Below are positions 3,235 to 45,000 of a stretch of 64,000 nt of DNA, piece by piece (the first letter of the stretch is position 1; each line of letters opens with the position of its first letter). Where the stretch lies: NCBI GenBank assembly GCA_965112735.1, contig OZ218950.1, positions 2,356,001 through 2,420,000 on the forward strand. The letters are read 5' to 3'. A program made the translations under genes and the position numbers. The DNA comes from Phaeosaccion multiseriatum. Lineage: Eukaryota > Protista > Ochrophyta, other classes. The notes beneath the pieces were generated by a model, which was not told where the DNA came from, did no database searches, and worked only from the letters and a program-made list of their open reading frames with translations.

Positions 3235-3460
3235 CTACGCCATTTTGAGCGGTTCCCCCACCCAAAGCCGTACGGCGTCGAGGAGAATGAGGATGAGCAT
3301 TGACCCTCCGAGGGAGTCCACGCAACAGTCCCACAGGCCCTTGGGAGGAGCACTTGCACTCTCTTCGAACATGTAGAACATAGGGAAGCTGTTGGTGGTA
3401 CAGAGACGGACGGACGGACGGACGGACGGATGGAGGGTGGGGGAGAGAAAGGTCAGAGAG

Positions 3461-3548
<88 letters not shown>

Positions 3549-4956
3549 CAGGCAAACACACGCACGCACACATTCGCACATCCACACAGACCCTGTAAGT
3601 CACACACACCTAACGATGAAGTAAATGCCATAAAAGGCCGAGCCCACTGTGTAGGCCATATCTCTATCCTCGAAGGAATAGTAAGGGAAGCCGCTGATGG
3701 TGAGAGTCTCCATGAAGGCAGTGCAGTACGCCATTGTAGCTACGAGTACGACAAGAAACAGTTTCCGAGCCCACGTGTCGGAGTAGGACGTCATGGCCTG
3801 CGTGTGGGGGAGGGGAGGGAGAGAGGGAGAGAGGGAGGGAGGGAGGATGGAAATTGTGTGCGTATTTGTGTGTGTGTGTGCGAGACAAGAAGAGAGGGAG
3901 AGAGAGAGGACAAACGTAGACGGAAACGGAGCGGGGGCGTGGGGGGTGGGCTTAGAACGAAAGAGCAGGAGGAGGACTGAGGCAGAACGAAGGCACACGA
4001 ACTCCCAGGCCCCAAGACCATACCCACAGGCCCTTTTGCTTGGACTTGTCACCTTTCGAATGATGAGATTGGATAGTGTGTGGTAGGTACAGAAGTAGAA
4101 GAATGTTGCAAAGTAGAGGGGAATGGGGACGTCATTGAGGCGCCAGGAGGGGAAGGTGTACTTGGCTTTGAGCACGCTGTAGAAGTAGTGCGTGTACCTG
4201 TTGGTGAGACAGGAAGGGAGGGGGGAGGGTAGGGAGGGAGGGAGGGAGGGAGGGAGGGTGGGAGGGACGAAAATGTGGTGTGGGAGAGAAGAGAGCGCCA
4301 CCGGCAGGGTCAGGGGGGTGCCGTGGGCGTTGGCGAGATGCACGCAGTAGTCCCCCCTCTCTCTCAACACTCCCCCCTCTCTTCTTTAGGGGCATCAAGA
4401 GCCTGCCACCTGTCCACACACACACCCTCATGTTTTGTCAGCTCCAAACAAAGGGTGATCTTCTGAACCCTTCCAGTCTCTCCTTTCCCCTCCGGTCCCG
4501 AGAGCTGGCTGAGCCCTGCTCCACTCACCAATAATTGCCAATGTGGCTGTAAATGGCCAGCCACAAGATGGCCTTGGTGGCGAATCGCTTAGTGAACGGC
4601 AGCTTGCTGTCCGGCCTACTCGGATAGAGCCACGGGAAGAGGAAAATGGGTAGGCACAGCCCCACGCAGACAACCATGTAGGCAACCTCGGCCATCTCTT
4701 CGTACAAGCCTAGACCGATGATCACAGCGAACACGAATATCCACACAGCAGAGTACACGAGGGTGAAGGCTTCCCAGGCCCTCTTCCCTGGGTTGTCGTC
4801 GGACCCGGTGGCGAACCAACGACTGCCGATCTCCCCTTCATCATCATCGGATGATCCTACTGCTGATGCTGCTGCTGGTGTGAGGAGCTGCTGCAGCAGG
4901 AGGAGGAGCGTAAAGAGACCCGCCAGGATGCTCGCCATGAGCTGTATGGTGTCCAT
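3235..4956 (-). CDS. CPI1: Cycloeucalenol cycloisomerase (cyclopropyl sterol isomerase), about 304 aa. Exons 4956-4529, 4197-4053, 3797-3610, 3388-3235
   Basis: Recognised motifs: NPGKRAWE, GNYW-YTHYFYSVLKAKYTFPSWRLNDVP, AFMETLTISGFPYYSFEDRDMAYTVGSAFYGIYFIVSFPMF, DSLGGSMLILILLD. Canonical GT-AG introns with consistent phases; multi-TM composition. Confidence 0.9.
3404..3544. repeat. (GACG)n and (CA)n microsatellites in CPI1 intron
   Basis: Direct reading. Confidence 0.9.
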
Positions 4957-5675
4957 CCTCAATCGTGCTTATCGTCCGATCGTGCCCACTTCGCTCCACT
5001 CTACCTCCCCCCTTTAGTGTCACTATCTCCTACCTACGCCTCTCTGCGCCTTGCAGCAGTTTTTGCCTTGACATCCACCCGCTCCTTGACCCGGTGTGTA
5101 TTATCCATTGACTTAGTCGCAGTGCTGGCAAATGCAGCTGTTGGTGATACAGGCGTGTCACAGCTGGGGTACCGTTGAGTTGCCCTCTTTGTTCTCTTGC
5201 ACCTGCTCGATCCTGGGCCTTGTAACCCTCCGGCGAAGACTGGGCCATTGGTCCCTAAGCCCTCTTTCGGTTTACTTCTTCCTGCCCCCCGTTCTGTGCT
5301 CATCTTCACACAACCTCCTCCTCCTCTTCCCTTCCCTCCTGCGCCTCTTCTACTTCCCGCCAAATTCGCGACGCTAGCAGGCGTCGCAGATGGTGAGATA
5401 CCAGTCGCACTACCACTTGCACTGTCCTACCTAAGGTGATGGCCAGACAGAGGCTGCAGTGTGGCGCCCCAGTTCTCCTTGTCTACGTGCTGCATTCCCG
5501 TATCAGCAGCAGAGTCAAAGCAAGAACCGTGGGCCTCCTGCTGCCGAGGCCGCCCCCCCGCCCGAGTTGAGCTGAGACTGGTGGTGCGGCTCCTTCTTTC
5601 CCCGCCATCTTCGTCGACGTACTCGCTGTCATAGTACCGTCTACTTTGGGGTTAGCTGCACGCGCCGACACGTCT

Positions 5676-6372
5676 GCCCTAGGCGGCCTATAAATAGGCC
5701 GAGGGCCTACGGCCCTCGCTAGGCGTGCACGGGGCCGAGTTTCAGGGCATCTCTCTCCTTGTTGCAGACGTATCAACACTCCAGCTCTTAACAGAAGGTA
5801 GTCAAGATCACTCTGTAACTTCTGCGAGAGCTTGGGCTGATGAAGATGCCGATTGTAGCACATACGCTCGTTCCGCTCCGGGCATAGCTCCTTCCCGCGT
5901 CTTCACGGAGGAGGTCGGCAAACGCCATGCAGACGGGCGCACAGCAGCGCAAGATGGCTCAGGAGCCTTCGACGTCATACGTAAGGAGAACGGAGAGGAA
6001 ACGGAGGGTGAATCCCTGGTTTAAGGATGGCAATGGCTGTGGCCGATAGTGGGTCAGCGGAACAGCGGAAACCAGGACAGGGGGGAGAATAGAGCAAGAG
6101 AAGAAGGAGGGCAACTAGGCGCAGGTCCAGGGCGGGAATATGCTTATATGCCCCTGGGCTGGCCCGGAACCCGCCCAAGTGTCGTCAGTTGTAAGCAAAT
6201 GTATTGCATGGGATGTGTTGTCTCTTTCCGCCTCGCTGGCCCTACGAGGAGTGCAGGCCTACAGGTGTGCTGCTACCCACTGGCTGGGCGGCACCACGCA
6301 CGCGCCCACGGTCACTGGGAGGCTGCCTAGAGGCGGGCTATAGGCCGCCGGCCTAGGCGTGCACGGGGCCGA
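5676..6372. repeat. Two related palindromic elements, each ending in the same 20-bp sequence CTAGGCGTGCACGGGGCCGA (5719-5738, 6353-6372)
   Basis: Exact 20-bp direct repeat, each copy preceded by inverted repeats. Confidence 0.7.
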
Positions 6373-6475
6373 TGAAACAAGAGGCAAAAAAAGGCGCTTA
6401 AGATAATTTATTTTCCCATGTACAGTATCTCTAAAACTAAGAGAAGGAAAATGCCGGGGCCTCGCTCCAGCAGTC

Positions 6476-9080
6476 TCACGACAGCTTGCTCTTGAGCAAT
6501 CCTGGCACTCCGCGGCCACCGTACTTGCCTCCATCGCGCAGCCTCTGCCCCATGAGCGGCGGGCTGTAGGCGAAGAGCTCGGCCCGACTGCCGACCGTGC
6601 CGTGGGTGACACGGGCGTAGGGGTGAAGGACTGCCCCTGCCTCCACTCTACAGGGTGACATGACCAGCAGCCCGGCAGTACTGTCTTCCCCAGCACCAGC
6701 AGCTCTTGGGCGAAGCACGTGACCAAAGACTTCACTACGCATGTCAAGTATGGCACCCGCCTCCAGGGTGAGGAAGTCAAAGTCAAACACATCGGCGGCC
6801 AACACCAATGCCTCGAGCGAGATATCCTTCGGCCGCGAGCACGACATTCGAACGTACAGATTGTATAGCCATGTACCGCGAAATACAGGCCACAGAACAT
6901 AAAGCAGGAAGAAGTGGCGCAGCCTGGTCAGAAGGCGGAAGTACTGCGTCCGCGCGCTCCGAGAAATATTCTGTGAGGACATGCACGCTCCCGTGATTGG
7001 GTCTGCGCCACGGCTGAAGTCACCGACGAGCAGCCACTTGGAAGCCACCAAGAGAAGAGTGAGGGCAAGGGCTCCTGCACACCCGCACACGGCCCCGTAC
7101 AGGGGCAGCATGGCCTCGAAGCTCATGCCCCGCTTCTTCCCCAAGCTTTGGTTTAGGTGCCTCCCCACCTCCACCACCACCACCAGAGTCCCAATATGGG
7201 TCGCCAGCATCAGCAGCGTGGCCCATGTCTCTCTGGCGACAAAGGCGGCCCAACGCTGGACGTCTCCGTTTGTGAGTGCGCCGGGTCCCGAGAGCGCAGC
7301 AGATGGGGCCGCATTCTCCCTCCCTCCACCCTCTACTGCGCCCTGCCCCCACGATGTCGACACGACTGTGTCCCCAGCTGCTACAGCGGTGAACATTTCA
7401 ACGCCTTGCTGTGCCGGAATGGCAGCACCAGGCTCCATGACGCACATGTACCCGAGTAGCGCTTCGTCCCCAACGGTGCAGGTCCCTCGCACACGTGTTG
7501 GCCCCACGGCGCTGCCTGCAGTGGCACTACCAACGCTGGTACTGGCTCTTCTCAGCGGCTCATCGGTAGCGAATGCGGCATACGACGCGAAAGAATCATT
7601 TCCTGTGGAAGTATTTGGGGTAGATGGAAAAGGAAAAAAGGAGAGAGAAGGGATGAGAGACAAGTTACATCTTCGCATCATTACACGGGTCTTCGCTCCA
7701 AGCAACGCAGAGCATGGCGGAGAGCCGTGGTGGCAAAGCGCGGTACCAAGCACCCCCCCCTCCTCCCACATACACTTCCCTAGACCTGTCCTCCCTTCTT
7801 ACCAAACGTAATGAGGTGGGCCGTCTCAGGATTGTACGCGCCATCACCAGAGTTGATAGCCCCCCTTCCCATGCGCACACCCAGGGCCTTGCCCCACCAG
7901 TCGAAGAGGCGCCAGCGGGCGAACACGAGCACGTACCCCGACACTTGGCTGTGAAGCTTGCCGAGGTACCATCGACGAAGCGCCCTTCCAAAGTTGTCGG
8001 TGTACACGCCGGGTCGAAGCAGGCAGCTCGGCGCAATGACCCACTTGAGCAGGACCAGGTACAGGGCAAGCGTCAGGAGGGCCCCATACACTCTAAACAC
8101 CGTGCTCATGACTCCTGCGTATCGAAAGTCTCTTGACACACCAAGGAAGGTGTACGCAACGGCGGGCATCCAGCTAAAGAAGGCCGTGAGCATGACAGAA
8201 GCCGTAATTAGCACCACACGCGCCCCGCCTTGCAGGAGTTGGAGGGCTTCCTTCGCCCATCCGTCACTGCCCTTTGCCAAGTGTCTCTCTCTGTCGGTCA
8301 TCACAGCTCGTCCACCCCCCTCCTCCTCGGCGCTGGGGCGGCTCTGCTTCCTCTGCGCCGGGTTGCCCTCCCACACACCATCACCAGCAGGAATGCGCGT
8401 CAGGGGGTATACAACGGACAGGCGAGCGACCCGTGTGCCCTCGCCCACCTTCACCCCACCGTACACCACAGCCCCGGCCTCCACCTCTGCGCCTGCACCC
8501 ACAACAATGCTGCGAAAGACCATGCTTGACGGCGTGAAGGAGCGAGGACACAGCGAGCCAGTCACCGAAGCGCCCGCCCCAATCGTGATGAGGTCAAACT
8601 CTCGAAGAAAGGTGGAGATGGAGCAGCGCCAGGAGACGTCGGCACCCAGAAGCTTGTAGAACAAAGTGATGCCCGGTGTTCCGAGGGTAACAAAGCCACC
8701 AACCACTTCCCACACATTGATGCACGCATTCACGTACCACCAGCGGTGATAGTACGATGCGTGGAGTGCGACGGTGCCCTCAAAATATGTCCCCACGACA
8801 AGCCACTTGACGCACAGGATGGAAGCGGAGTACGTCAGGAACCACAGGACGATGCTGAAGGAGACCAGAGGGCCCCAACCCACAACTCCACCTGGAGAGG
8901 CGTAAGATGACTCCGGATTGGCGAGATGACTCAAGTCCTTCCCTACCCACACCGAAGTCTCGATGTCAGAGTCCGTCTGGAGCCAGCGGAGGTAGCGGTA
9001 AGCTGGAATCATGCAAGCGAAGACCTGCGCCAAGAGTACCGCAATGAGTACCACTTGCGTCACCTTGAAGCCCACAGAGG
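6476..9080 (-). CDS. C-terminal membrane domain with three TM-pair plus hexapeptide (LbH) repeats; resembles the epsilon-poly-L-lysine synthetase C-terminus / NRPS terminal domain
   Basis: Three repeats each start after TM helices with KW(L/V)(V/I/L): VKWLVVG..YYHRWW..GTPG..YKLLGADV..DLITIGAGASV..VGAGAEVEAGAVV..WEGNPA; LKWVIAP..PGVY..RRWY..ALGVRMG; SKWLLVG..FRGTWLYNLY..FDFLTLEAGAILD. Stop TGA 6476-6478. Confidence 0.75.
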
Positions 9081-12000
9081 ACATCATCTTTGCGCACAGC
9101 AACGGCTCCTGCTCCTCTATCACCCCCTCGTGAGCCGCTGCCCCTTCGCCGTGGCTCTGCCTTCCCTTTCCCCCACCGGTAACGAGGTCGCGATGCCGCT
9201 GCTCCACCACCAGTGTGGCGAGGCCCTCTGCGGTGGGGTTCTGTAGCACCTCCGCCAGCGGCAGCTCCTCCTGCAGCTCAAACTGGTCCTGGAGCGTGTT
9301 GACCAGCTGCACCACGGCCAGAGAGTCCATACCCAACTCCAGGAAGGAGACAGTACTGTTGATACTCGTATCCGTACCAACAGCTTGGAGCTGGGCCTCG
9401 AGGTCCGCCTCCTTCAGAGGAGAGACAGCCCGCCCTTCTCTCATCTGCTGCTGCTGCTGCTGCTGCTGCCTCTCCATCTGGAAAATACGTGCAATCTCCA
9501 GGCAGGCATCCACCGCCTTCTCATGCACGTCTTCTTCGCTCTCGATCACCACTCGACCCCTGTGCGGAGAGTCATCTGGCTCATAGAGACCAGAGCACAT
9601 GAATACCAACGGCGGCCTTGCCGTTGTCTTCTTCCCTTCAGTTCTGCCTTCACCCGCACTTCCCCGCGGTACCGCCGCTGCCAATGCTCCCCAATTACTC
9701 AAGATAACGTGAGCATTCGTTCCGCCCACGCCATACGAGTGCACCGCGGCGATGAGCGTGCCTGCCCGAGCTCGCGCTCCACCTCCATCCTCGCTGCTGC
9801 TGCTGCCCTTCCAGTCCACGGGAGTCTTGAAAGTAGTGAGCTGCGAGCAGAGGGCGATGCGCGACTGCTCAATGTAGCCGAGCTCTGGGGACAAGTGCTC
9901 TCCATGCAGATTGGGCGGTGTCTGCTGGTGCTGAAGTACTAAAATGGCCTTAATGAGCTGCCCCAGTCCCGACGCACCCTCCATATGCCCCACACTGGTC
10001 TTCACCGCACCCACGCAGAGTGGATATATCCGCTCCCCGTTAACGCGTTGCTCCTCCTCAACGTAGACCCCGTGCAGAGCGCCCATCTCAATGCTGTCGC
10101 CCAGCACCGTGCCCGTCCCGTGTGCCTCCACGTATCCCACCTCACACGCTCGACGACTTGCGTCTCTCAATGCCCTCCTCATCACCTCTCGCTGTGCCAC
10201 GCCATTGGGGGCCGTCATCTGAGCGCTTTGCCCGTTGTGGTTGACTGCGCATCCTTCAATGACTGCCAGGATGTTGTCATGGTCCGCTTCCGCGTCCGAG
10301 AGACGCTTCAAAACGAGAGCTCCGCAGCCTTCCGCTCGGACATAACCATCAGCTCCGGCAGCAAAGGACGCCGTGCGACTGAGATGGATAGGAATCGATG
10401 GGGGGAAGACAAAAGGAAGGAATGAGAGAGAGAGTCGTCAAAAGCGGTGCCGCAACCAAGAAATCAATCATATGCGCCACAAAGCTTCCGCTTACCCTTT
10501 CTTAGAGAGCAGACCGGCCTTCCGGAGGGTAACAAAGCCTTGGGGGTGAAGAAGTAAGTTCACCCCCCCCACCACGGCTGTCTTGCACTTGCCCAGTCTG
10601 AGCTTGTCGCACGCGGCCTCCAGCGCAACAAGCGAGCTCGAGCACGCAGTGTCCAGCGTTAAGCTTGGCCCCACGAGTCCAAGCCGATTGCTGATGCGTC
10701 CGGCCACCAGAGAGGTACTCGTTCCCCCGAGGGTGTACGCATCAGGCTTCTGTGCACTGTCCGTCTGTACGGTCGCCCAGTCACTGCCGGATAGACCGAT
10801 GAAGACGCCCGTGTCTGAACCCTTCATGGCATACTTGTCCCAGTTCTTTGCCGTCATATTCCTCTCTTCCGGCGTCCCCTCGCGAAAAGCCTGCAAAGCC
10901 CGCCTCTGCAAGTGCTTCGTACGCTACTTGGAGCATCAACCGCTGATTCGGGTCCATGGTGCTGGCCTCGCCGGACGGAATGCCAAAGAGTTCATTATCG
11001 AAGCTCTGCAATTCATCATCCAAAAAGCCCCCGTGCAGCCCTAAAGTCTCCTCGCCCCACCCCTCGAAGGGGAGCCGAGTGGCACAGTCGACTCCATCGA
11101 CAAGATTCCCCCAGAAAGCGGCAGGGTTGTCTGCGCCGCCCGGGAAGCGACAAGCCATGCCCACCACCGCCAGCCCACGACGGCGGCGCTGACTCTCTGC
11201 CGTGAGCTCTCCTCGCGCTTGGTGGAGAGACTGCTCCTCTTCGAGCTCCGCACAGACTCGTTGCTGCGGTGCCCCTTCTTTGCTGCCATCATGCCCAGCA
11301 ACTCCGTGAGACAGTACTTCATCTTCGACCCATGCCGCCAATGCTGCCACCGTTGGATACGAGAAGAGTACGTCGCTGGTCACATTCACTCCAAAGCGAG
11401 ACTGCAGCCGGCCGCGCAGCTCCGCCGTTGCCAAAGAGTCAAGGCCTGCCTCCATCAGCGGGGTGGTGTCGGTCAGCTCTTCGGCACCCTCCCCAATCAG
11501 CTCCTTGGCTATATCCATCACCGCAAGGCTCACCATACGTTTCCGGTCTTCGGCGGACAGCCCCAGCAGCTCCTCGCGCACTTCATTGTTGAGTTCGGTG
11601 TTGCTGGACACGCCTGCTGCTGTTGAGACAAGCCCTGACAGCAGGAACGAGCCGCGGGACGCACCCAAGCTGTCTGCAAACTTGCTCCAGTCCATCCCAG
11701 GCAGAACGGCATAATCGCCCAAATGCGCTGACGACATCGCAGCGGCATCTAAGGCAGCCATGCCCAGCTCAGCTGACACCGTGCCCACACCAGCCAGCTC
11801 CAACTGTTTTTGAACGATATCGAGCTGGGCGGCCATACCAACGTCAGCCCACGGCCCCCACTGCAATGACGTCCCTGCGAGCCCGAGGTGTCGCCTGTGC
11901 CGCATCAGCCCGTCCACAGCCGCATTCGCTGCAGCGTAGTTGGCCTGTCCAGCGTTACCCAGTACTCCGGCCATGGATGTGAAGCAAAAGAAGAAGTCAA

Positions 12001-30000: not shown

Positions 30001-33000
30001 AAGCCTCTCGCCCGCTGCACGCGGAAGCCCCGCATCTCCACGAGCACCTCTTTGCTGTCGAAGTCTGCAATGCGGATGTCAAACTTGACGCTGTCCACCA
30101 CTGACTGGCCCTCACTCAGCTTCGTGTGCACCCACACGTTCTTTCCCGCCATGGAGGCGGAAACAACCACTTCGTCAAAGCCTGCAGGTAGGAATGGAGA
30201 TTCCCCCCCCTCCTTGAGCAGCTTCCTTGGCAGCGCTTGCATGATGGTATGAGTAGCATTGTCCAGCACTGCGGGGTGCAGAGCAAAGCCCTTCATCTCC
30301 CACGGCTCGCACAGCTCCTCATCCATGGCACACACGATCGACAGAACCTCTCCGTCCCCTCCGTACATGTGGCGGGTCCGCTGAAAGCGGGGGCCGTACT
30401 GGAAGCCGGCGTCTGCGAAAGACTTGTAGATCTCACTCGGTACGTCCTGCTCGCCAACTCTAGCTCGAATGGATTCCACGTGCAAAGAAGCTCGCGCCGT
30501 GCTACGCTCCATGACAGACACGTACTTCATTCTTGCCGTGGTGCCCTTGTCGCCCGTGGCACCTCCGAAGAACTGCATGCTTCCATCTGCCGCGTGAAGG
30601 GCACTCATCCCGGCACAGACCATTGTATGGCGGCTTTGAGCTTGGTCCATGCCCGCCTGTTGGAAACCCTCAATCTCCAGTGGGACCACAAGGCTGGCTC
30701 CGTGCAGGACTACCTGCTGCTCCACTCCGAGCTGTCTGCCTCCTAGAGCAGCCACGACGCCCACTTCAATGTACGTCACCCCCGGAATGATCACCATATT
30801 GTTGACGGCATGGTCCTTGAGAAGGTCCTTGAGATGAGGGGAGAAGGGGCTGGGGAGCCTCATTCCGTCTCTCTCCTGGACCATCTCACCATTCGGCATA
30901 AAAGCAAGCGGAGGCTTGTACCAAGGAAATGATCGGCGAGTCGGATAAAGCTCAAGATGCTCCGGCCCCGCTATACTGCCCAGGGCTGCTCTAAACGAAT
31001 CCTCAGAGCTCTTCCCGCGCGTGAGGGAGGAGATCCACGCCAGCCCCTCGCGACGCTCGCACTTGGCTCCCATGCTGCTCAGCACAGTGTTGGGGCCCAC
31101 CTCAACGATGCTCAAATCAGCCCCCCTCCCGTCTCCCATCCAGTGCTCCACCAGCGTGTGGATGCCTTCTGCGAACAGCACCGGCGACAGCATGTGCTGC
31201 ACCCAATACGTCGCCTGCGTCACCTCCTCCCCTGTCACCACCTCACCCGTCACGTTGGACACCAGGGGAATGCGTGGGGCACTGAATGACACCTGCCTCA
31301 GAGCCTCCTCCAGCGCACGTACAGCGGGCTCCATCAGAGGAGAGTGGAAGGCGTGCGACACCTCCAGGGCCTTGCAGCCCACCCCATCTGCCGTGAGCTT
31401 CTCCACCACCTTGTCCACAGCGCTGCGCGCTCCAGAGATCACGCTCGCGCTCGGTCCATTCGATGACGCCAGCACCACCTCCCCTGCCCCCCCCGAAGCG
31501 TCGATACTTGCCAAAGTCGCCTCCTTGCCTGCCCTCACTGCGAACATCACTCCCTCGCCCTCGGGGCAGGCCTGCATGGCGGCTCCTCTCTTGGCGGACA
31601 GCATCAGTCCGTCCTCCAGCGACATGACGCCGGCCACGCACGCCGCCACTACCTCGCCCAGGCTGTGGCCCATCACCATGGAAGGCTCCACGCCCTCCGA
31701 CTTCCACAGCTCACACAGGGCGTGTTCCAACACAAACAGGCACGGCTGGCAGTAGCGTGTCTCCTTCAGTACCGCTTGTGTAGTCTTCTCCTCCTCCTTC
31801 CCATCCTCAGCGGCGGCAGGGTACATGAGCTCCACCACAGACTTGTCCAGCCAGGCCCGCTCCATGAGCAGCCTGCTGCACTGCTGCACGCACTCGCGGA
31901 ACACGCCCTCCTTCTCGTACAGCTCCCTGCCCATGCCCACGTACTGCGAGCCCTGTCCTGTGAACAAGAACGCCACTGGAGTCGCTGCTTGCCCCGGATT
32001 AGGGCCTGGCGCACCCTCACTCTTCTCCCCATAGCTCCTCAACAGCACGTGTGAATTCGTTCCTCCTGCCCCGAACGAGCTCACCCCCACCAAGACATCT
32101 CCCTCGTCCTCCAGCAGCACCATCGCCGACGGGAGCTGCACGGGGAAGCCGTCCATGTCCAGCTCCGGGTTGATACTCTCGAGGTGGAGGTTGGCGGGCA
32201 CCGCGCGGTGCTGCAGCATCAAGACGGCCTTGATGAGCCCAGCAATGCCCGCCGCACCCTCCAGATGGCCAATATTGGTCTTGGCCGCACCCACTACCAG
32301 CGGGAAAGAGTCGGCGCGGTTCTTTCCGTACGTGGCCCTGAGAGCGCTCATCTCGATGGGGTCGCCGAGCGAGGTGCCCGTGCCGTGCGCCTCCACGATG
32401 CGTACCTCGGAGCCCTCTCGACCGGCCTCACGCAGCGTCGCCTCGATGAGTCTCTGCTGGGCGGCGGGGCTGGGGGCAGTGAGGCGGGCACTGGTTCCGT
32501 TGTGGTTCACGGCACAGCCCTCAATCACAGCGAGGACCGTGTCTCCGGCAGCGAGGGCGTCATCTAGGTGTTTCAGCACAACGGCACCGCATCCTTCACC
32601 ACGCACGTATCCGTTTGCCGACGCGTCGAACGTCTTGCAGCGCCTGAGAAGGGCATGGGAATTGTGGGGTGGGGTGAGGTAAGTTGACTTCAATGGCACT
32701 CAAGTCGTTCTCACTGTGCGACTTGCCAGAGAGGCGATGGCCAAAGGGGGAAGAACAACAGGAATGGAAGCACTCCACACTCACACGCACATACCCGTCG
32801 GGCGATAAGAAACCACTTCCCTTCAGCCTTTCGAAGCTCTGCGTGCCGAGCAACAGATTCACTCCGCCCACCACGGCTGCGTCGCACTTGCCCATGCGTA
32901 AGCTGCTGCAAGCGCTGTCCAGGGCCACCAGAGAGGACGAGCACGCCGTGTCAGTGGTCATGGACGGGCCCTGCAGTCCGAGCGTGTACGACAGACGATT

Positions 33001-36000
33001 GGACACGCTTGCCCCTGCTGCGCCCATGGTGCTATACACGCCTGTCGACGACGAGCCTTCCCCGCGTGCTCCCCAGTCACTGCCGCTCATGCCCACGAAC
33101 ACTCCGGTCTGACTGCCACTCAGGCTTTGCTTGGTATAGCCCGCAGTCACAAGCGCCTCCAGTCCCACCTCCAGCATCACCCGTTGGTGTGGGTCCATGG
33201 CAGAAGCCTCAGCACTGGTAATGCCGAACACAGATGAATCGAACATTTCCACGCCGTCGATGAAGCTTCCTTGCCACTGCTGCTCATCCTCCTCCTTGCT
33301 CGCCCAGCGGTCGAGCGGAGCAGGCTGGACACAGTCCTTGCCATTGCTAAGCATGGCCCAAAACTCCTCTGGGCTGTTCGAACCACCTGGCAAGCGGCAC
33401 GCCATGCCCACCACCGCCAACGGTGCCTTCATGTCGCCCCTCTGGTATCCAATCGACTCACTCTCACCCTCATCATCCTCCTCAGATCCCATCACCAAGG
33501 CTTCCAGCCAGGTAGACAGCGCTACGATTGAGGGGTGACTGAAGAGCACGTCGTTGGGGACGGACACGCCGAAGCGAGCTTGGAGTCGACTCCGGAGCTC
33601 CACCGTAGACATGGAGTCCAGCCCAGCCTCCATCAAAGGCGTATCAGCCTCGAGCACGGTGCCCGCTTCACCAATGCATGCCGTTGCGATCTCCGTGATG
33701 ACGCCTTCCAGCATGGGCTTCCGACTCGGCTCTGGCATCTCCAGCAGGTCACGCCTCACGGCAGCAGTAACGTTATTCCCCACCCCGTTTCCCGCGCGGC
33801 TACCCAAGCCCGCATCCTCTACGAGGGCCTCAAGCATTGTCGAGCCACCAAAAGCCCCCGGCGCAGATACTTGCCAGTCCATTCCCGGCGCCACCAGGAG
33901 CTCGCGTGATGCCGCAGATGGGGATGACACGCTGGCATCAAGCGCCGCCATACCCAATGCATTGCTGATGAGCCCAACGCCGGCCATCTCCAGACTGGCC
34001 ATGGCAACTTCGGACCGAGCGGCCATGCCAGCTTCGCCCCACGGCCCCCACTGGAGGGCCACAGAGCTGGAGTGACCGAGGCGCCGACGATGCTGCATCA
34101 GCCCGTCCACAGCAGCGTTGGCTGCAGCATAGTTGGCCTGGCCTGCATTGCCAAGCACACCTGCCATGGATGTGTAGGACACAAAGAAGTCCAAGGGCCA
34201 GGCCATCTGCACCGACAGCTCGTGCAGATTCCAAGCGCCCTCCACCTTCGGCTTGAAGACCTCTTCGATACTCTCGGGCGTCTGGTCCACCAGCAAGCGA
34301 TCGTCGAGCACGCCAGCAGCATGGATGACACCTCGCACGGGCGGCATGCAGCTGAGCGCCGTGCCTAGGGCCTTCTCAAGCGACTGCGCGCTAGACACGT
34401 CGCACGATACAGCCTTGGTGCTCACCCCGCCGGCCACGGTGAGAAGCTCCTCCCACAGCGCCTGGGAGTCCGCCTTGACTTTTCCCCCTCGCGAGAGCAG
34501 TACAAGATGATGAGCTCCTTTATCGGCCAAATGCTTCGCAGTCGCCAGCCCCAGCGCCCCCAGCCCACCGCTGATGACATAAGTCCCGTCTCGCACGACG
34601 GGAATACCACACTCAGGGCTTTTGAGCACAACCTTCCCTATGTGCTTCGCAGTTCTGAGGAAGTTCATTGCATCCGCAAGCTCATCCCTCAAGTCGAATG
34701 TCTTCACTGGTAGCGCCTCGGCCCTGCCCGCCTCGCTGCCCGCTGTCAGCTGCTCCAGCCCAGCGAACGCCCAGCCCTGCTTCTCGGCCTTGAAGTCGTC
34801 TGCTATCATGCAGTCCAGCGCAATCATCTCGTACAGCACGTCGGGCCTGGCAGCCTTCATCGCCTCCCTGGTCCACACGCCTCGCTTGCCAATCTCCATG
34901 AAGCGCCCGTTCTTCGTCAGCAGCTCCAGAGAGTAAGGGATGAAGTTGTCCGACAGGCAATTGAGTACCACATCCACCTTCGCAGCTCCAATGGAAGCCT
35001 TGAAGGCCTCCGCATCTCGCGACGACGCAATGTGCTTCACACCCAGGCCTCGCAAGTAGGCGTGCTTCTCAACGGATCCAGCAGTGGCGTAGATCTCCGC
35101 TCCGATGCGCTGAGCAATCTGCACGGCCACCAGACCCACTCCACCTGACGCGGCATGGATGAGCACCTTCTCACCACGCTTCAAGCCAGCGAGTTGCTCG
35201 AATGCATGCACCACTGTGAGCCACGCGATAGGCAGCGCTGCCATGTCCTCGAAGGTCCTGTTGGAAGGCATGTTGGCCAGACACACGTCACTTGTCGTTA
35301 CGTGGGAGCAGAAGCAGCCCTTGTCCGGAAACCCGTAGACCTTGTCTCCCACTTGAAAGCGCGACTTTCGCGATGATCGAGTGACCACCCCCGATAGCTC
35401 GATGCCAGGCTGTCCAGGGTCGCCAGGGTACAGGTCGAGCACATTCAGCACGTCTCTGAAGTTGAGCCCCACCGCCTTGACACAAATTTCAATCTCCCCG
35501 TCCTGCAAGGCAGTGTCTCTCTCGGAAGGGAGTATGTCTCTGCGCTTCAAGCCTCCCTCGATGGTTCCCCTCGCCATGAGATCGAAAGAGAAGGGAAGGC
35601 TGACTACCGAGGAGCGAGTCAGCTGAGGCGTCTTGCATTCTCCTCCTTGCACACGCACATCTTGACTCTGGAGGGGAAGACCCAACGCCAAGCTCAAGTC
35701 CTCCACGTTCGCTTCCACGACCATGATGTGCATCTCTGGCCGCTCGATGCGAACGGAGCGAATCATGCCAAACACCAGCATGTGTGCCCATCCCTCGCCT
35801 CCCCCGCTCAGCGTGTCTTGTAGTAGCACCATCAAGGGGACTGGTCTCTTGGCCAACTGCTGCGTTACCGCCAGCAGCTTCTGTGCTCCCTGCTGAGCGG
35901 CGCTGGCTGATGACATTGCCGTCTGTCCCTCCCCTCCTCCACCGCCGAGCACGTAAAGCACTCGCGACCACTCGCTCCTCTCCAAGCCTCTCACCACATG

Positions 36001-39000
36001 CTGGTCATAGGCACACTCCTGCACACGCAGCGTCACGTGCTCGGGCACGGATTGCTCAATACGCTTCACCAACGCTGCAGCTGTACTTACTCTATCTACC
36101 AAAGCCAGCCACGTCTCCTTCTCCATACAAAACTTCCCCGGGGTGGTTGCCAGAGCCAGAGCCTCGTCTGGCTGCCACTCCAGATAGTATAAGGCTCGAC
36201 GAAGAGGGTTCAGGAGCGTAAAGCCCTTGGCCCTCTGCAGCTTGACGCCCTTCATGGTCACGAGCACGTACTGGCTGTCAAAGTCGGCAATAACAATGTC
36301 AAAGTTGACGCTGTCGCGCTTGTCGCTGATCTCGGTGAGCACGGTATGCACCCACACCTTTTCTCCTCTGATGGCGCCCTTCGCAACGACGTCTTTGCAT
36401 CCAGCTGGCAAGAATGTAGCACCCTGGGTCAGCTCAGAAGGCAGAAGCGCAAGCATGGTGTGTGCGGCACTGTCCAGCACGGCGGGGTGGAGGTAGAATC
36501 CACGCACCTCCCACTCAGAGCACAGGCTGGGGTCCTGCGCTGTCGCCACGGACAGAGCCTGTCCCTCGGCAGCGTACAAGCGCTCTGTCCGCCTGAAACG
36601 GGGGCCGAAGTTGAAGCCGACCTTAGCGAACGTGGCGTACAGCTCACCCGAAATGTCGCGCTGCCCCACTGCCTCCTGGATGCTCCTCACGTCCATCATT
36701 GCAGTAGCCTCTCTTGCCTCCAGCACCACTGACGCCGCCCTGGCTACAGCCTCACCTGCCTTGCCGCGGGGGCCGCCCGTGATCCGCGTCTTGCCGTGGG
36801 CAGAGAGGAACACGTTTACCTCCGAGCATGCCACTGTCGTGGACCCATCCACCAATCGCTCCACGCCAGGCACACTGGCGCCTGCCACCTCCAGCGGGGC
36901 CGTGAAGACGAGGCCCTTCATGCACGCCTGGCCATCGGCGGGGAAGGCCTCGCCCCTCAGTAGCGTGGCCAGGGCCAGCTCAATGTAGCCCATGCCCGGC
37001 ATGAGCACCACCCCCCCCACTGCGTGCTCCTGCAGCAGGCCCTTGAGCCTTGGAGAGAATGGGCAGGACAGCAGCACCCCGCCCTTCTCATCTCGCACCC
37101 CTCCACTCGGGCAAAAAGCGTGATTATCGCTCTTGTACCACGGGAAGGCCACACGATTCGGGAAGAGCGCCTCCTCCTTGACGAAGGGGCCCCCATCGCC
37201 ATTCATGCCAGCCATCGGTACGGACTCACGCTTGTTCCCGTAGCTCCTCAGCAGCACGTGTGAATTCGTTCCTCCTGCCCCGAACGAGCTAACCCCCACC
37301 AACACGTCTTCCTCGTCCTCCAGCTGCACCATCGCCGACGGGAGCTGCACGGGGAAGCCGTCCATGTCCAGCTCTGGGTTGATGCTCTCGAGGTGGAGGT
37401 TGGCGGGCACCGCGCGGTGCTGCAGCATCAAGACGGCCTTGATGAGCCCAGCAATGCCCGCCGCACCCTCCAGATGGCCGATATTGGTCTTGACCGCACC
37501 CACTACCAGCGGGAAAGAGTCGGCGCGGTTCTTTCCGTACGTGGCCCTGAGAGCGCTCATCTCGATGGGGTCGCCGAGCGAGGTGCCCGTGCCGTGCGCC
37601 TCCACGATGCGTACCTCGGAGCCCTCTCGACCGGCCTCACGCAGCGTCGCCTCGATGAGTCTCTGCTGGGCGGCGGGGCTGGGGGCAGTGAGGCGGGCAC
37701 TGGTTCCGTTGTGGTTCACGGCACAGCCCTCAATCACAGCGAGGACCGTGTCTCCGGCAGCGAGGGCGTCATCTAGGTGTTTCAGCACAACGGCACCGCA
37801 TCCTTCACCACGCACGTATCCGTTTGCCGACGCGTCGAACGTCTTGCAGCGCCTGAGAAGGGCATGGGAATTGTGGGGTGGGGTGAGGTAAGTTGACTTC
37901 AATGGCACTCAAGTCGTTCTCACTGTGCGACTTGCCAGAGAGGCGATGGCCAAAGGGGGAAGAACAACAGGAATGGAAGCACTCCACACTCACACGCACA
38001 TACCCGTCGGGCGATAAGAAACCACTTCCCTTCAGCCTTTCGAAGCTCTGCGTGCCGAGCAACAGATTCACTCCGCCCACCACGGCTGCGTCGCACTTGC
38101 CCATGCGTAAGCTGCTGCAAGCGCTGTCCAGGGCCACCAGAGAGGACGAGCACGCCGTGTCAGTGGTCATGGACGGGCCCTGCAGTCCGAGCGTGTACGA
38201 CAGACGATTGGACACGCTTGCCCCTGCTGCGCCCATGGTGCTATACACGCCTGTCGACGACGAGCCTTCCCCGCGTGCTCCCCAGTCACTGCCGCTCATG
38301 CCCACGAACACTCCGGTCTGACTGCCACTCAGGCTTTGCTTGGTATAGCCCGCAGTCACAAGCGCCTCCAGTCCCACCTCCAGCATCACCCGTTGGTGTG
38401 GGTCCATGGCAGAAGCCTCAGCACTGGTAATGCCGAACACAGATGAATCGAACATTTCCACGCCGTCGATGAAGCTTCCTTGCCACTGCTGCTCATCCTC
38501 CTCCTTGCTCGCCCAGCGGTCGAGCGGAGCAGGCTGGACACAGTCCTTGCCATTGCTAAGCATGGCCCAAAACTCCTCTGGGCTGTTCGAACCACCTGGC
38601 AAGCGGCACGCCATGCCCACCACCGCCAACGGTGCCTTCATGTCGCCCCTCTGGTATCCAATCGACTCACTCTCACCCTCATCATCCTCCTCAGATCCCA
38701 TCACCAAGGCTTCCAGCCAGGTAGACAGCGCTACGATTGAGGGGTGACTGAAGAGCACGTCGTTGGGGACGGACACGCCGAAGCGAGCTTGGAGTCGACT
38801 CCGGAGCTCCACCGTAGACATGGAGTCCAGCCCAGCCTCCATCAAAGGCGTATCAGCCTCGAGCACGGTGCCCGCTTCACCAATGCATGCCGTTGCGATC
38901 TCCGTGATGACGCCTTCCAGCATGGGCTTCCGACTCGGCTCTGGCATCTCCAGCAGGTCACGCCTCACGGCAGCAGTAACGTTATTCCCCACCCCGTTTC

Positions 39001-42000
39001 CCGCGCGGCTACCCAAGCCCGCATCCTCTACGAGGGCCTCAAGCATTGTCGAGCCACCAAAAGCCCCCGGCGCAGATACTTGCCAGTCCATTCCCGGCGC
39101 CACCAGGAGCTCGCGTGATGCCGCAGATGGGGATGACACGCTGGCATCAAGCGCCGCCATACCCAATGCATTGCTGATGAGCCCAACGCCGGCCATCTCC
39201 AGACTGGCCATGGCAACTTCGGACCGAGCGGCCATGCCAGCTTCGCCCCACGGCCCCCACTGGAGGGCCACAGAGCTGGAGTGACCGAGGCGCCGACGAT
39301 GCTGCATCAGCCCGTCCACAGCAGCGTTGGCTGCAGCATAGTTGGCCTGGCCTGCATTGCCAAGCACACCTGCCATGGATGTGTAGGACACAAAGAAGTC
39401 CAAGGGCCAGGCCATCTGCACCGACAGCTCGTGCAGATTCCAAGCGCCCTCCACCTTCGGCTTGAAGACCTCTTCGATACTCTCGGGCGTCTGGTCCACC
39501 AGCAAGCGATCGTCGAGCACGCCAGCAGCATGGATGACACCTCGCACGGGCGGCATGCAGCTGAGCGCCGTGCCTAGGGCCTTCTCAAGCGACTGCGCGC
39601 TAGACACGTCGCACGATACAGCCTTGGTGCTCACCCCGCCGGCCACGGTGAGAAGCTCCTCCCACAGCGCCTGGGAGTCCGCCTTGACTTTTCCCCCTCG
39701 CGAGAGCAGTACAAGATGATGAGCTCCTTTATCGGCCAAATGCTTCGCAGTCGCCAGCCCCAGCGCCCCCAGCCCACCGCTGATGACATAAGTCCCGCCT
39801 CGCACGACGGGAATACCACACTCAGGGCTTTTGAGCACAACCTTCCCTATGTGCTTCGCAGTTCTGAGGAAGTTCATTGCATCCGCAAGCTCATCCCTCA
39901 AGTCGAATGTCTTCACTGGTAGCGCCTCGGCCCTGCCCGCCTCGCTGCCCGCTGTCAGCTGCTCCAGCCCAGCGAACGCCCAGCCCTGCTTCTCGGCCTT
40001 GAAGTCGTCTGCTATCATGCAGTCCAGCGCAATCATCTCGTACAGCACGTCGGGCCTGGCAGCCTTCATCGCCTCCCTGGTCCACACGCCTCGCTTGCCA
40101 ATCTCCATGAAGCGCCCGTTCTTCGTCAGCAGCTCCAGAGAGTAAGGGATGAAGTTGTCCGACAGGCAATTGAGTACCACATCCACCTTCGCAGCTCCAA
40201 TGGAAGCCTTGAAGGCCTCCGCATCTCGCGACGACGCAATGTGCTTCACACCCAGGCCTCGCAAGTAGGCGTGCTTCTCAACGGATCCAGCAGTGGCGTA
40301 GATCTCCGCTCCGATGCGCTGAGCAATCTGCACGGCCACCAGACCCACTCCACCTGACGCGGCATGGATGAGCACCTTCTCACCACGCTTCAAGCCAGCG
40401 AGTTGCTCGAATGCATGCACCACTGTGAGCCACGCGATAGGCAGCGCTGCCATGTCCTCGAAGGTCCTGTTGGAAGGCATGTTGGCCAGACACACGTCAC
40501 TTGTCGTTACGTGGGAGCAGAAGCAGCCCTTGTCCGGAAACCCGTAGACCTTGTCTCCCACTTGAAAGCGCGACTTTCGCGATGATCGAGTGACCACCCC
40601 CGATAGCTCGATGCCAGGCTGTCCAGGGTCGCCAGGGTACAGGTCGAGCACATTCAGCACGTCTCTGAAGTTGAGCCCCACCGCCTTGACACAAATTTCA
40701 ATCTCCCCGTCCTGCAAGGCAGTGTCTCTCTCGGAAGGGAGTATGTCTCTGCGCTTCAAGCCTCCCTCGATGGTTCCCCTCGCCATGAGATCGAAAGAGA
40801 AGGGAAGGCTGACTACCGAGGAGCGAGTCAGCTGAGGCGTCTTGCATTCTCCTCCTTGCACACGCACATCTTGACTCTGGAGGGGAAGACCCAACGCCAA
40901 GCTCAAGTCCTCCACGTTCGCTTCCACGACCATGATGTGCATCTCTGGCCGCTCGATGCGAACGGAGCGAATCATGCCAAACACCAGCATGTGTGCCCAT
41001 CCCTCGCCTCCCCCGCTCAGCGTGTCTTGTAGTAGCACCATCAAGGGGACTGGTCTCTTGGCCAACTGCTGCGTTACCGCCAGCAGCTTCTGTGCTCCCT
41101 GCTGAGCGGCGCTGGCTGATGACATTGCCGTCTGTCCCTCCCCTCCTCCACCGCCGAGCACGTAAAGCACTCGCGACCACTCGCTCCTCTCCAAGCCTCT
41201 CACCACATGCTGGTCATAGGCACACTCCTGCACACGCAGCGTCACGTGCTCGGGCACGGATTGCTCAATACGCTTCACCAACGCTGCAGCTGTACTTACT
41301 CTATCTACCAAAGCCAGCCACGTCTCCTTCTCCATACAAAACTTCCCCGGGGTGGTTGCCAGAGCCAGAGCCTCGTCTGGCTGCCACTCCAGATAGTATA
41401 AGGCTCGACGAAGAGGGTTCAGGAGCGTAAAGCCCTTGGCCCTCTGCAGCTTGACGCCCTTCATGGTCACGAGCACGTACTGGCTGTCAAAGTCGGCAAT
41501 AACAATGTCAAAGTTGACGCTGTCGCGCTTGTCGCTGATCTCGGTGAGCACGGTATGCACCCACACCTTTTCTCCTCTGATGGCGCCCTTCGCAACGACG
41601 TCTTTGCATCCAGCTGGCAAGAATGTAGCACCCTGGGTCAGCTCAGAAGGCAGAAGCGCAAGCATGGTGTGTGCGGCACTGTCCAGCACGGCGGGGTGGA
41701 GGTAGAATCCACGCACCTCCCACTCAGAGCACAGGCTGGGGTCCTGCGCTGTCGCCACGGACAGAGCCTGTCCCTCGGCAGCGTACAAGCGCTCTGTCCG
41801 CCTGAAACGGGGGCCGAAGTTGAAGCCGACCTTAGCGAACGTGGCGTACAGCTCACCCGAAATGTCGCGCTGCCCCACTGCCTCCTGGATGCTCCTCACG
41901 TCCATCATTGCAGTAGCCTCTCTTGCCTCCAGCACCACTGACGCCGCCCTGGCTACAGCCTCACCTGCCTTGCCGCGGGGGCCGCCCGTGATCCGCGTCT

Positions 42001-45000
42001 TGCCGTGGGCAGAGAGGAACACGTTTACCTCCGAGCATGCCACTGTCGTGGACCCATCCACCAATCGCTCCACGCCAGGCACACTGGCGCCTGCCACCTC
42101 CAGCGGGGCCGTGAAGACGAGGCCCTTCATGCACGCCTGGCCATCGGCGGGGAAGGCCTCGCCCCTCAGTAGCGTGGCCAGGGCCAGCTCAATGTAGCCC
42201 ATGCCCGGCATGAGCACCACCCCCCCCACTGCGTGCTCCTGCAGCAGGCCCTTGAGCCTTGGAGAGAATGGGCAGGACAGCAGCACCCCGCCCTTCTCAT
42301 CTCGCACCCCTCCACTCGGGCAAAAAGCGTGATTATCGCTCTTGTACCACGGGAAGGCCACACGATTCGGGAAGAGCGCCTCCTCCTTGACGAAGGGGCC
42401 CCCATCGCCATTCATGCCAGCCATCGGTACGGACTCACGCTTGTTCCCGTAGCTCCTCAGCAGCACGTGTGAATTCGTTCCTCCTGCCCCGAACGAGCTA
42501 ACCCCCACCAACACGTCTTCCTCGTCCTCCAGCTGCACCATCGCCGACGGGAGCTGCACGGGGAAGCCGTCCATGTCCAGCTCTGGGTTGATGCTCTCGA
42601 GGTGGAGGTTGGCGGGCACCGCGCGGTGCTGCAGCATCAAGACGGCCTTGATGAGCCCAGCAATGCCCGCCGCACCCTCCAGATGGCCGATATTGGTCTT
42701 GACCGCACCCACTACCAGCGGGAAAGAGTCGGCGCGGTTCTTTCCGTACGTGGCCCTGAGAGCGCTCATCTCGATGGGGTCGCCGAGCGAGGTGCCCGTG
42801 CCGTGCGCCTCCACGATGCGTACCTCGGAGCCCTCTCGACCGGCCTCACGCAGCGTCGCCTCGATGAGTCTCTGCTGGGCGGCGGGGCTGGGGGCAGTGA
42901 GGCGGGCACTGGTTCCGTTGTGGTTCACGGCACAGCCCTCAATCACAGCGAGGACCGTGTCTCCGGCAGCGAGGGCGTCATCTAGGTGTTTCAGCACAAC
43001 GGCACCGCATCCTTCACCACGCACGTATCCGTTTGCCGACGCGTCGAACGTCTTGCAGCGCCTGAGAAGGGCATGGGAATTGTGGGGTGGGGTGAGGTAA
43101 GTTGACTTCAATGGCACTCAAGTCGTTCTCACTGTGCGACTTGCCAGAGAGGCGATGGCCAAAGGGGGAAGAACAACAGGAATGGAAGCACTCCACACTC
43201 ACACGCACATACCCGTCGGGCGATAAGAAACCACTTCCCTTCAGCCTTTCGAAGCTCTGCGTGCCGAGCAACAGATTCACTCCGCCCACCACGGCTGCGT
43301 CGCACTTGCCCATGCGTAAGCTGCTGCAAGCGCTGTCCAGGGCCACCAGAGAGGACGAGCACGCCGTGTCAGTGGTCATGGACGGGCCCTGCAGTCCGAG
43401 CGTGTACGACAGACGATTGGACACGCTTGCCCCTGCTGCGCCCATGGTGCTATACACGCCTGTCGACGACGAGCCTTCCCCGCGTGCTCCCCAGTCACTG
43501 CCGCTCATGCCCACGAACACTCCGGTCTGACTGCCACTCAGGCTTTGCTTGGTATAGCCCGCAGTCACAAGCGCCTCCAGTCCCACCTCCAGCATCACCC
43601 GTTGGTGTGGGTCCATGGCAGAAGCCTCAGCACTGGTAATGCCGAACACAGATGAATCGAACATTTCCACGCCGTCGATGAAGCTTCCTTGCCACTGCTG
43701 CTCATCCTCCTCCTTGCTCGCCCAGCGGTCGAGCGGAGCAGGCTGGACACAGTCCTTGCCATTGCTAAGCATGGCCCAAAACTCCTCTGGGCTGTTCGAA
43801 CCACCTGGCAAGCGGCACGCCATGCCCACCACCGCCAACGGTGCCTTCATGTCGCCCCTCTGGTATCCAATCGACTCACTCTCACCCTCATCATCCTCCT
43901 CAGATCCCATCACCAAGGCTTCCAGCCAGGTAGACAGCGCTACGATTGAGGGGTGACTGAAGAGCACGTCGTTGGGGACGGACACGCCGAAGCGAGCTTG
44001 GAGTCGACTCCGGAGCTCCACCGTAGACATGGAGTCCAGCCCAGCCTCCATCAAAGGCGTATCAGCCTCGAGCACGGTGCCCGCTTCACCAATGCATGCC
44101 GTTGCGATCTCCGTGATGACGCCTTCCAGCATGGGCTTCCGACTCGGCTCTGGCATCTCCAGCAGGTCACGCCTCACGGCAGCAGTAACGTTATTCCCCA
44201 CCCCGTTTCCCGCGCGGCTACCCAAGCCCGCATCCTCTACGAGGGCCTCAAGCATTGTCGAGCCACCAAAAGCCCCCGGCGCAGATACTTGCCAGTCCAT
44301 TCCCGGCGCCACCAGGAGCTCGCGTGATGCCGCAGATGGGGATGACACGCTGGCATCAAGCGCCGCCATACCCAATGCATTGCTGATGAGCCCAACGCCG
44401 GCCATCTCCAGACTGGCCATGGCAACTTCGGACCGAGCGGCCATGCCAGCTTCGCCCCACGGCCCCCACTGGAGGGCCACAGAGCTGGAGTGACCGAGGC
44501 GCCGACGATGCTGCATCAGCCCGTCCACAGCAGCGTTGGCTGCAGCATAGTTGGCTGCAGCATAGTTGGCCTGGCCTGCATTGCCAAGCACACCTGCCAT
44601 GGATGTGTAGGACACAAAGAAGTCCAAGGGCCAGGCCATCTGCACCGACAGCTCGTGCAGATTCCAAGCGCCCTCCACCTTCGGCTTGAAGACCTCTTCG
44701 ATACTCTCGGGCGTCTGGTCCACCAGCAAGCGATCGTCGAGCACGCCAGCAGCATGGATGACACCTCGCACGGGCGGCATGCAGCTGAGCGCCGTGCCTA
44801 GGGCCTTCTCAAGCGACTGCGCGCTAGACACGTCGCACGATACAGCCTTGGTGCTCACCCCGCCGGCCACGGTGAGAAGCTCCTCCCACAGCGCCTGGGA
44901 GTCCGCCTTGACTTTTCCCCCTCGCGAGAGCAGTACAAGATGATGAGCTCCTTTATCGGCCAAATGCTTCGCAGTCGCCAGCCCCAGCGCCCCCAGCCCA

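Follow-up and report, generated by a model that had tools for sequence, protein, structure and literature searches.

A giant polyketide synthase gene of Phaeosaccion multiseriatum ends in a Pls-related membrane tail, a candidate chain-releasing acyltransferase

We analysed a 64,000-nt stretch of the Phaeosaccion multiseriatum genome (GenBank assembly GCA_965112735.1, contig OZ218950.1, positions 2,356,001 to 2,420,000; hereafter the window, whose own numbering from 1 is used throughout), and in particular the 3' end of the polyketide synthase (PKS) gene that occupies most of it. This giant gene lies on the minus strand as a series of long stop-free pieces that extend from beyond position 63.4 kb down to a stop codon at 6476-6478. 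It continues past the far end of the window, where the C-terminal half of a ketosynthase (KS) domain lies at 63058-63411 and no start codon is in sight. Downstream of its last acyl carrier protein (ACP) domain, the spliced protein carries a tail of 823 residues, which is related to the terminal domain of the poly-lysine synthetase family Pls/PosA and which, in our moderately confident assessment, releases the ACP-bound chain by passing it to an acceptor at a membrane. The gene end and the parts of the tail are listed here in the direction of transcription, with predicted transmembrane (TM) helices and with E-values from a hidden Markov model (HMM) of the repeat built from homologues and relatives of the tail.

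9208-9369, minus strand: last ACP (Pfam PP-binding, E 5.7e-10, residues 357-410 of the segment 10437-7783; LGMDSL serine motif)
9007-9063, minus strand: TM helix 1 (hydropathy 2.44; tail residues 29-47)
8809-8874, minus strand: TM helix 2 (hydropathy 1.94; tail residues 92-113)
8329-8808, minus strand: soluble repeat 1 (C1), with KWLVVG, RWW, GTP, LGA, DLITIG, hexapeptide coils and WEGNPA (repeat HMM E 9e-62; Pfam Hexapep)
8161-8238, minus strand: TM helix 3 (hydropathy 1.79; tail residues 304-329)
8035-8112, minus strand: TM helix 4 (hydropathy 2.04; tail residues 346-371)
7352-8046, minus strand: soluble repeat 2 (C2), split by the intron, with KWVIAP, RRWY, LGV and HLITFG (repeat HMM E 9.4e-21 across the splice)
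7603-7802, minus strand: predicted intron (200 nt, GT...AG, phase 1), which restores the frame of repeat 2
7166-7222, minus strand: TM helix 5 (hydropathy 1.95; tail residues 576-594; a long helix in the AlphaFold2 model of exon 2)
7046-7102, minus strand: TM helix 6 (hydropathy 2.12; tail residues 616-634; a long helix in the same model)
6503-7039, minus strand: soluble repeat 3 (C3), with KWLLVG, GTW, DFLTLE and left-handed beta-helix coils (repeat HMM E 7.5e-22)
6719-6721, minus strand: codon of the repeat-3 His (tail residue 743, in 'GH'), a candidate general base, His in 48 of 52 aligned tails
6476-6478, minus strand: stop codon of the whole PKS, 8 residues beyond the end of repeat 3

Kyte-Doolittle hydropathy revealed six strong hydrophobic helices in three pairs, and the repeat HMM matched three units at tail residues 87-273, 341-532 (spanning the splice) and 611-815. 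Neither Pfam nor NCBIfam yielded a thioesterase or reductase in the tail. An earlier, sequence-only reading of this DNA had described TM pairs alternating with three motif-bearing soluble repeats, had seen no thioesterase or reductase, and had concluded that the PKS chain ends at a membrane domain, proposing TM prediction as one check. All of this is borne out: the helices fall into the pairs described, every motif could be located, and the tail is the true C-terminus of the protein, with the ACP and over half of the tail encoded in one exon. Homologous tails likewise terminate at the C-termini of their proteins.

The continuity of gene and tail depends on one splice. The stop-free segment 10437-7783 encodes the C-terminal half of the last KS, a poly-Gln linker, the last ACP and tail residues 1-448, and the exon-1 frame then meets a stop seven codons past '...HLITFG'. 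A GTAAG donor at 7802 together with a CACAG acceptor ending at 7603 would remove 200 nt in phase 1, so that the frame resumes at 7602-6479. The window sequence AHLITFG...CTVGDEALLGY aligns with Ectocarpus AHLIQIG...ISIGSKALLGF, so that the flanks of the junction are consecutive parts of the same repeat; because both sides match consecutive stretches of one repeat with no gap, the splice is supported by homology. That the fusion is unreal, with the tail transcribed separately, a pseudogene or produced by faulty assembly, seems to us very improbable. Such an error would be easiest to imagine here because the intron is predicted from sequence only and near-identical 5.2-kb tandem copies, possibly mis-assembled, lie nearby in the gene. 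But the frame from the ACP to tail residue 448 is free of stops, the splice restores the frame and lets the homologous repeat continue without a gap, and independent contigs from four public runs of one sample (X1-X4) span the region at 95-100% identity. These contigs are DNA-like, crossing the intron unspliced with no splice joints. The same architecture also occurs in other eukaryotes, namely in a Stygiella transcript (P0100) and in a protein of a metagenomic eukaryote (P0007). Nine of the 17 listed variant letters that the X1-X4 contigs carry at the tail, representing alleles or close paralogues, are synonymous, a share compatible with constraint.

We compared the tail with the NCBIfam model TIGR02353 (Pls/PosA nonribosomal peptide synthetase (NRPS) terminal domain), whose curated cut-off is 423.1 bits. 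The exon-1 piece scored 60.8 bits (E 8.4e-17) and the exon-2 piece 15.1 bits, so that the window tail misses the cut-off (60.8 vs 423.1 bits); for comparison, a control protein from Sulfuriferula (P0017, WP_147073502) scored 622 bits, and tails of the clade to which the window tail belongs (see below) scored 105-173 bits. An exhaustive HMMER search with the tail against 1.84 billion representatives returned 906 matches, 361 of them at E <1e-10, mostly with three matched stretches each and none above about 38% identity. The best matches are eukaryotic and include an Ectocarpus 'long-chain acyl-CoA synthetase' and proteins of Amorphochlora, Bigelowiella, Picozoa and Salpingoeca. Also among the best are a 4380-residue Stygiella PKS and the 2920-residue P0007, which combines a fatty acyl-AMP ligase (FAAL) with ACP, KS, ACP and tail, and whose source is taken as eukaryotic because the same contig encodes TPX2. 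KS domains were found in only 2 of 159 proteins (the 150 matches listed plus cluster members). A word-indexed search with the P0007 tail returned 8 proteins and no further PKS fusion, a weak negative as the index demands shared 5-mers. Judged by these scores, the tail is homologous to the Pls/PosA terminal domain, as a relative rather than an equivalog member.

The relationship was resolved further in a tree of 121 tails, whose N-terminal adenylating domains were typed as amino-acid or FAAL from their scores with two references; NCBIfam FAAL models bore out the FAAL assignments. All 42 amino-acid-type proteins (42/42) fell into one clade (53 rows, SH-aLRT 96), including the Sulfuriferula protein that NCBI names Pls/PosA. 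The window tail lies in the other, FAAL-associated clade (65 rows, SH-aLRT 95), where it is sister to Ectocarpus P0001 (SH-aLRT 99). The identifiable partners of tails in this clade are all FAAL-like or PKS modules, and its named members are all eukaryotes, further including Creolimax, Chrysophaeum and Seminavis. The tail of the Stygiella protein P0100 branches near the amino-acid clade. In the window, the tail is likewise fused behind a lipid-type carrier, the PKS ACP directly upstream in the same exon. The tree places the window tail in what we take to be an uncharacterised eukaryotic sister family of Pls/PosA that is coupled to lipid-type carriers. Because the tail scores below the cut-off and belongs to a separate FAAL/PKS-tied clade, we regard it as a Pls homologue and not as a Pls/PosA member. 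The sequence-only reading had called the domain poly-lysine-synthetase-like and had proposed the TIGR02353 search. The likeness stands as homology (a significant E-value, the many HMMER matches and the same layout of six TM helices and three repeats), but it does not extend to family identity, given 61 bits against a cut-off of 423 and the separate clade.

Conservation was assessed over 52 aligned tails. The Lys of KW in repeats 1 and 2, the last Trp of RWW and the Gly of each xLGA are nearly invariant, as are the Asp-Leu of DLxxIG in repeat 1 and one His in repeat 3, which is present in 100% of the amino-acid clade and 98% of the FAAL clade. The window tail retains 40 of the 46 positions conserved at >=70%, the repeat-3 His included. 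Several acidic residues are conserved in the amino-acid clade alone and vary in the FAAL clade, and the window tail is without them. At the site that reads T-H-L-F-E-D, the window has GHVLRP, in which the His is kept and the Glu (98% in the amino-acid clade) is replaced by Arg; this motif is variable across the FAAL clade. Six of nine clade-specific positions are kept by the window tail (Y105, W130, G135, R166, R186 and H759). This residue pattern fits an acceptor that would differ from the cationic diamino acids of Pls.

Structure prediction gave a consistent picture of the fold. For the tail of the closest complete homologue, that of Ectocarpus, AlphaFold2 returned a model with pLDDT 86 and pTM 0.88 in which each unit consists of long helices followed by beta-helix coils. 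The window exon-2 piece (6479-7600) was modelled with pLDDT 79 and pTM 0.78; its model has two long helices, and the conserved His is surrounded by a beta-helix. Foldseek with the Ectocarpus model matched single repeats to hexapeptide acetyltransferases and to nothing else, and VIA-align gave Z-scores for window repeat 3 of 11.7 with the GlmU acetyltransferase domain, 11.4 with QdtC, 10.5 with WlbB, 9.4 with LpxA and 9.0 with LpxD. The PDB sequence matches of repeat 1 are gamma-carbonic anhydrase and serine acetyltransferase proteins of the left-handed beta-helix (LbH) type. In these models and comparisons window repeat 3 and the whole Ectocarpus tail are predicted to adopt the LbH acyltransferase fold. 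Searches by sequence, profile and Foldseek recovered generic LbH proteins only and no solved Pls structure. LbH acyltransferases transfer acyl groups from thioesters to N or O atoms, as a rule by means of a catalytic His, and LpxA and LpxD use acyl-ACP.

The order of domains that would deliver a chain to the tail was obtained by local searches with in-gene domain queries and with Pfam. The units are given from the far end of the window toward the tail, all on the minus strand, followed by the last KS.

Unit 1: KS-ACP
Unit 2: KS-AT-DH-ER-KR, three ACPs, enoyl-CoA hydratase and HMG-CoA synthase, an in-cis beta-branching cassette
Unit 3: KS-ACP
Units 4-6: three AT-less KS-DH-ER-KR-ACP
Units 7-8: two KS-AT-DH-ER-KR-ACP
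Unit 9: KS-AT-KR-ACP
Unit 10: KS-DH-ER-KR-ACP
Unit 11: KS-ACP-tail
9904-11173, minus strand: last KS (phmmer with in-gene KS; Pfam Ketoacyl-synt_C E 2.8e-34), interrupted by what are presumed to be short introns

The last KS has the Cys-His-His motifs DTACSSS, HGTGT and GHMEGASG, and neither an acyltransferase (AT) nor any reductive domain stands between it and the ACP; the linker that joins the two contains a poly-Gln (CAG/CAA) run at 9435-9482. Among the last eight modules (10500-49100), five are AT-less (the three duplicated ones, module 10 and the final KS-ACP) and the other three have an AT. With five of eight modules AT-less, malonyl loading must take place in trans or via neighbouring ATs. 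A tandem duplication at about 32200-44400 (minus-strand coding), with a period of 5209 nt and one mismatch in about 5300 compared positions, underlies the three AT-less KS-DH-ER-KR-ACP modules, of which two are virtually identical; this reflects either a very recent duplication or assembly uncertainty in copy number. Farther upstream, the beta-branching cassette (48449-56592, minus strand) comprises a KR, three tandem ACPs, ECH_1/ECH_2, the HMG-CoA synthase and then a divergent KS-ACP, the HMG-CoA synthase lying partly in the piece 51528-52334 and partly at the start of 48449-51664. In-cis HMG-CoA synthase cassettes are unusual, and the present one leads us to expect that the chain bears a methyl or similar branch. 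Under colinearity, the last ACP is expected to carry a long chain, saturated for the most part, that has 3-oxo and 7-hydroxy groups and, further back, the beta-branch.

Together, these data lead us to favour, with moderate confidence, the view that the tail is a chain-releasing acyltransferase, which would pass the ACP-bound chain to an acceptor at the membrane, either an amine or a hydroxyl. Its domain identity, architecture, clade and conserved residues are established by the analysis; for its catalytic role, its topology, the structure of its donor and the nature of its acceptor we infer the following scheme. The tail consists of three tandem units, each made of two TM helices, a helical part with KW and RWW, and a predicted left-handed beta-helix. 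Because each TM pair, as an even number of helices, brings the chain back, the three beta-helix repeats would be found on the PKS side of the membrane; the charge bias of the loops is too weak for orienting the helices. The last ACP, standing behind an AT-less KS that appears competent for condensation, would offer its thioester to the repeats. The nucleophile of a free acceptor, an amine or a hydroxyl, would attack this thioester, probably activated by the repeat-3 His, and the chain would be freed as an ester or amide, either at the membrane or by entering or crossing the six-helix bundle. That an amine or hydroxyl receives the chain, as the sequence-only reading had also proposed, is a reasonable supposition by analogy with Pls biochemistry (PMC9205021) and with the LbH acyltransferase fold; the polymerisation and the algaenan- or cutin-like wall product that it raised as well are speculative.

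Several observations weigh against this proposal. Repeats 2 and 3 have diverged, scoring 68 and 71 bits in the repeat HMM against 201 for repeat 1. In repeat 3, the window tail has a Cys ('RMSCS', region 6839-6841) where all other aligned tails of both clades have Gly, and this Gly-to-Cys change in the xLGA turn is either lineage-specific or a hint that constraint has relaxed. The repeat-3 His could not be placed on any known catalytic His, as the profile alignments to PDB chains stop outside the GH site. The first two of these points would equally suit a tail that serves chiefly to anchor the protein in the membrane or as an export conduit and that itself catalyses little or nothing, the chain being freed by hydrolysis or by a separate enzyme; so would the H that replaces the usual D in the DL motif of repeat 2 and the missing W.G.PA ending of repeat 3. 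We nevertheless consider such a tail unlikely. The tail retains most of the conserved positions, among them the near-invariant His and those of the KW, RWW and DL motifs. The synonymous share among the listed tail variants hints at constraint. Furthermore, no alternative release domain was found in the gene or in the larger open reading frames (ORFs) tested in the 6.4 kb downstream of it, which gave no Pfam matches.

The predicted chain also bears on how far the likeness to Pls may go. In Pls, the repeats C1-C3 join a carrier-bound unit to a freely diffusing acceptor without a thioesterase or condensation (C) domain, and the growing chain is never covalently bound (PMC9205021). The window tail might similarly be an iterative polymerase, in which the 7-hydroxyl makes each released chain the next acceptor and yields a polyester (estolide-, cutin- or algaenan-like) that is extruded via the TM bundle. 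The homology and the identical architecture to the Pls polymerase domain speak for such iteration, as does the repeated addition of carrier-bound units to a free growing chain by Pls (PMC9205021), and the KS-AT-KR-ACP module (unit 9) should leave a persistent hydroxyl in the chain. On the other hand, the tail falls outside the clade of the characterised polymerases, the acidic residues of that clade (e.g., the Glu of H-L-F-E-D) are not conserved in it, and many of its relatives have the plain FAAL-ACP-tail layout, with fatty acyl donors that may well lack a nucleophile. On balance we regard iteration of this kind as quite unlikely. The bolder version, a membrane polymerase-exporter that links hydroxy/oxo very-long-chain polyketide units to each other or to a wall acceptor while moving them through the six-helix bundle, is a speculative long shot. 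A releasing acyltransferase that hands each chain to an amine or hydroxyl acceptor remains our preferred reading.

Beyond the stop codon the neighbourhood changes character. Directly 3' of it, the stretch 6182-6375 (and also 5600-5793 and 5988-6181) shows a contig word-depth 50-100x that of the gene and has numerous loose ends and rearranged joints, which indicates a high-copy repeat or mobile element abutting the end of the PKS gene. Two hydrophobic, multi-pass-looking ORF pieces on the minus strand at 3600-4962, with no Pfam match, probably belong as exons to the gene that follows the PKS downstream. Long (CA)n/(TG)n microsatellites lie at 2400-2780 and 3430-3600, and the downstream ORFs include an acidic poly-Asp run and PSLP repeats.

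To our knowledge, release by giant protist PKSs is largely unknown, and many of these enzymes have no thioesterase. If the proposal holds, a membrane LbH acyltransferase fused to the last ACP would be a third logic of PKS release, in addition to hydrolysis or cyclisation and to reduction; the product would then be released at a membrane, and the tail would be a candidate producer of lipid conjugates or of aliphatic wall polymers in algae. Should the tail instead be a polymerase-exporter, it would represent a long-sought enzyme class for the resistant aliphatic (algaenan- or cutin-like) wall polymers of algae. The tail clade spreads over brown algae, diatoms, pelagophytes, chlorarachniophytes, choanoflagellates, ichthyosporeans and jakobids and has no characterised member, so that one biochemical result would annotate the whole tail family. 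The clade-specific arginines, together with the loss of the acidic residues of the polylysine clade, give testable hypotheses on the acceptor. What marks this locus is the AT-less KS-ACP right before the tail, the in-cis HMG-CoA synthase cassette, and the conserved His together with Gly-to-Cys at an otherwise invariant position. Full-text literature searches returned no description of PKS-Pls or FAAL-Pls fusions as a release domain. A preprint on the dinoflagellate Cladocopium terms NRPS_term_dom 'of unknown function', and the FAALPred paper lists eukaryotic 'FAAL-NRPS' and 'FAAL-PKS' architectures in which the tail was not analysed.

Compared with canonical modular PKS termination, the window PKS differs in that Pfam and NCBIfam find no C-terminal thioesterase or thioester reductase. 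With Pls/PosA it shares a carrier followed at the C-terminus by six TM helices in three pairs that alternate with three LbH repeats, again with no thioesterase or C domain, and the KW, RWW, GA and DL motifs and the repeat-3 His are common to both. They differ in what lies upstream, which is a multi-module PKS ending in KS-ACP in the window and a single amino-acid adenylation-thiolation (A-T) module in Pls/PosA, and in the donor, predicted to be a lipid-like acyl chain in the window and a diamino acid in Pls/PosA.

The same tail subfamily is found in the eukaryotic FAAL-ACP-tail proteins of Ectocarpus (CBJ30872), Seminavis ('FadD21'), Chrysophaeum, Bigelowiella, Amorphochlora, Picozoa, Salpingoeca and Creolimax, the Ectocarpus tail being about 32-35% identical to that of the window. 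Those proteins load one fatty acid via their FAAL, whereas the donor in the window would be made by at least 10 PKS modules, and no FAAL is visible in the window. Other PKS-tail fusions are two proteins far smaller than the window gene product. The Stygiella incarcerata transcript P0100 (4380 aa) encodes two PKS modules followed immediately by a Pls-like tail, and P0007 (FAAL-ACP-KS-ACP-tail, 2920 aa) ends, like the window PKS, in an AT-less KS-ACP-tail. We considered whether the KS-ACP-tail end was inherited as a cassette shared with P0007 and found no support for this, as the last KS of the window is 47-48% identical to KS domains of its own gene and 42% to the KS of P0007. Finally, window repeat 3 resembles soluble LbH acyltransferases such as LpxA and LpxD in its predicted left-handed beta-helix (Z 9-11.7). 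The soluble enzymes are homotrimers, whereas the window protein has three non-identical repeats in one chain, with TM hairpins between them and the whole fused to the donor carrier.

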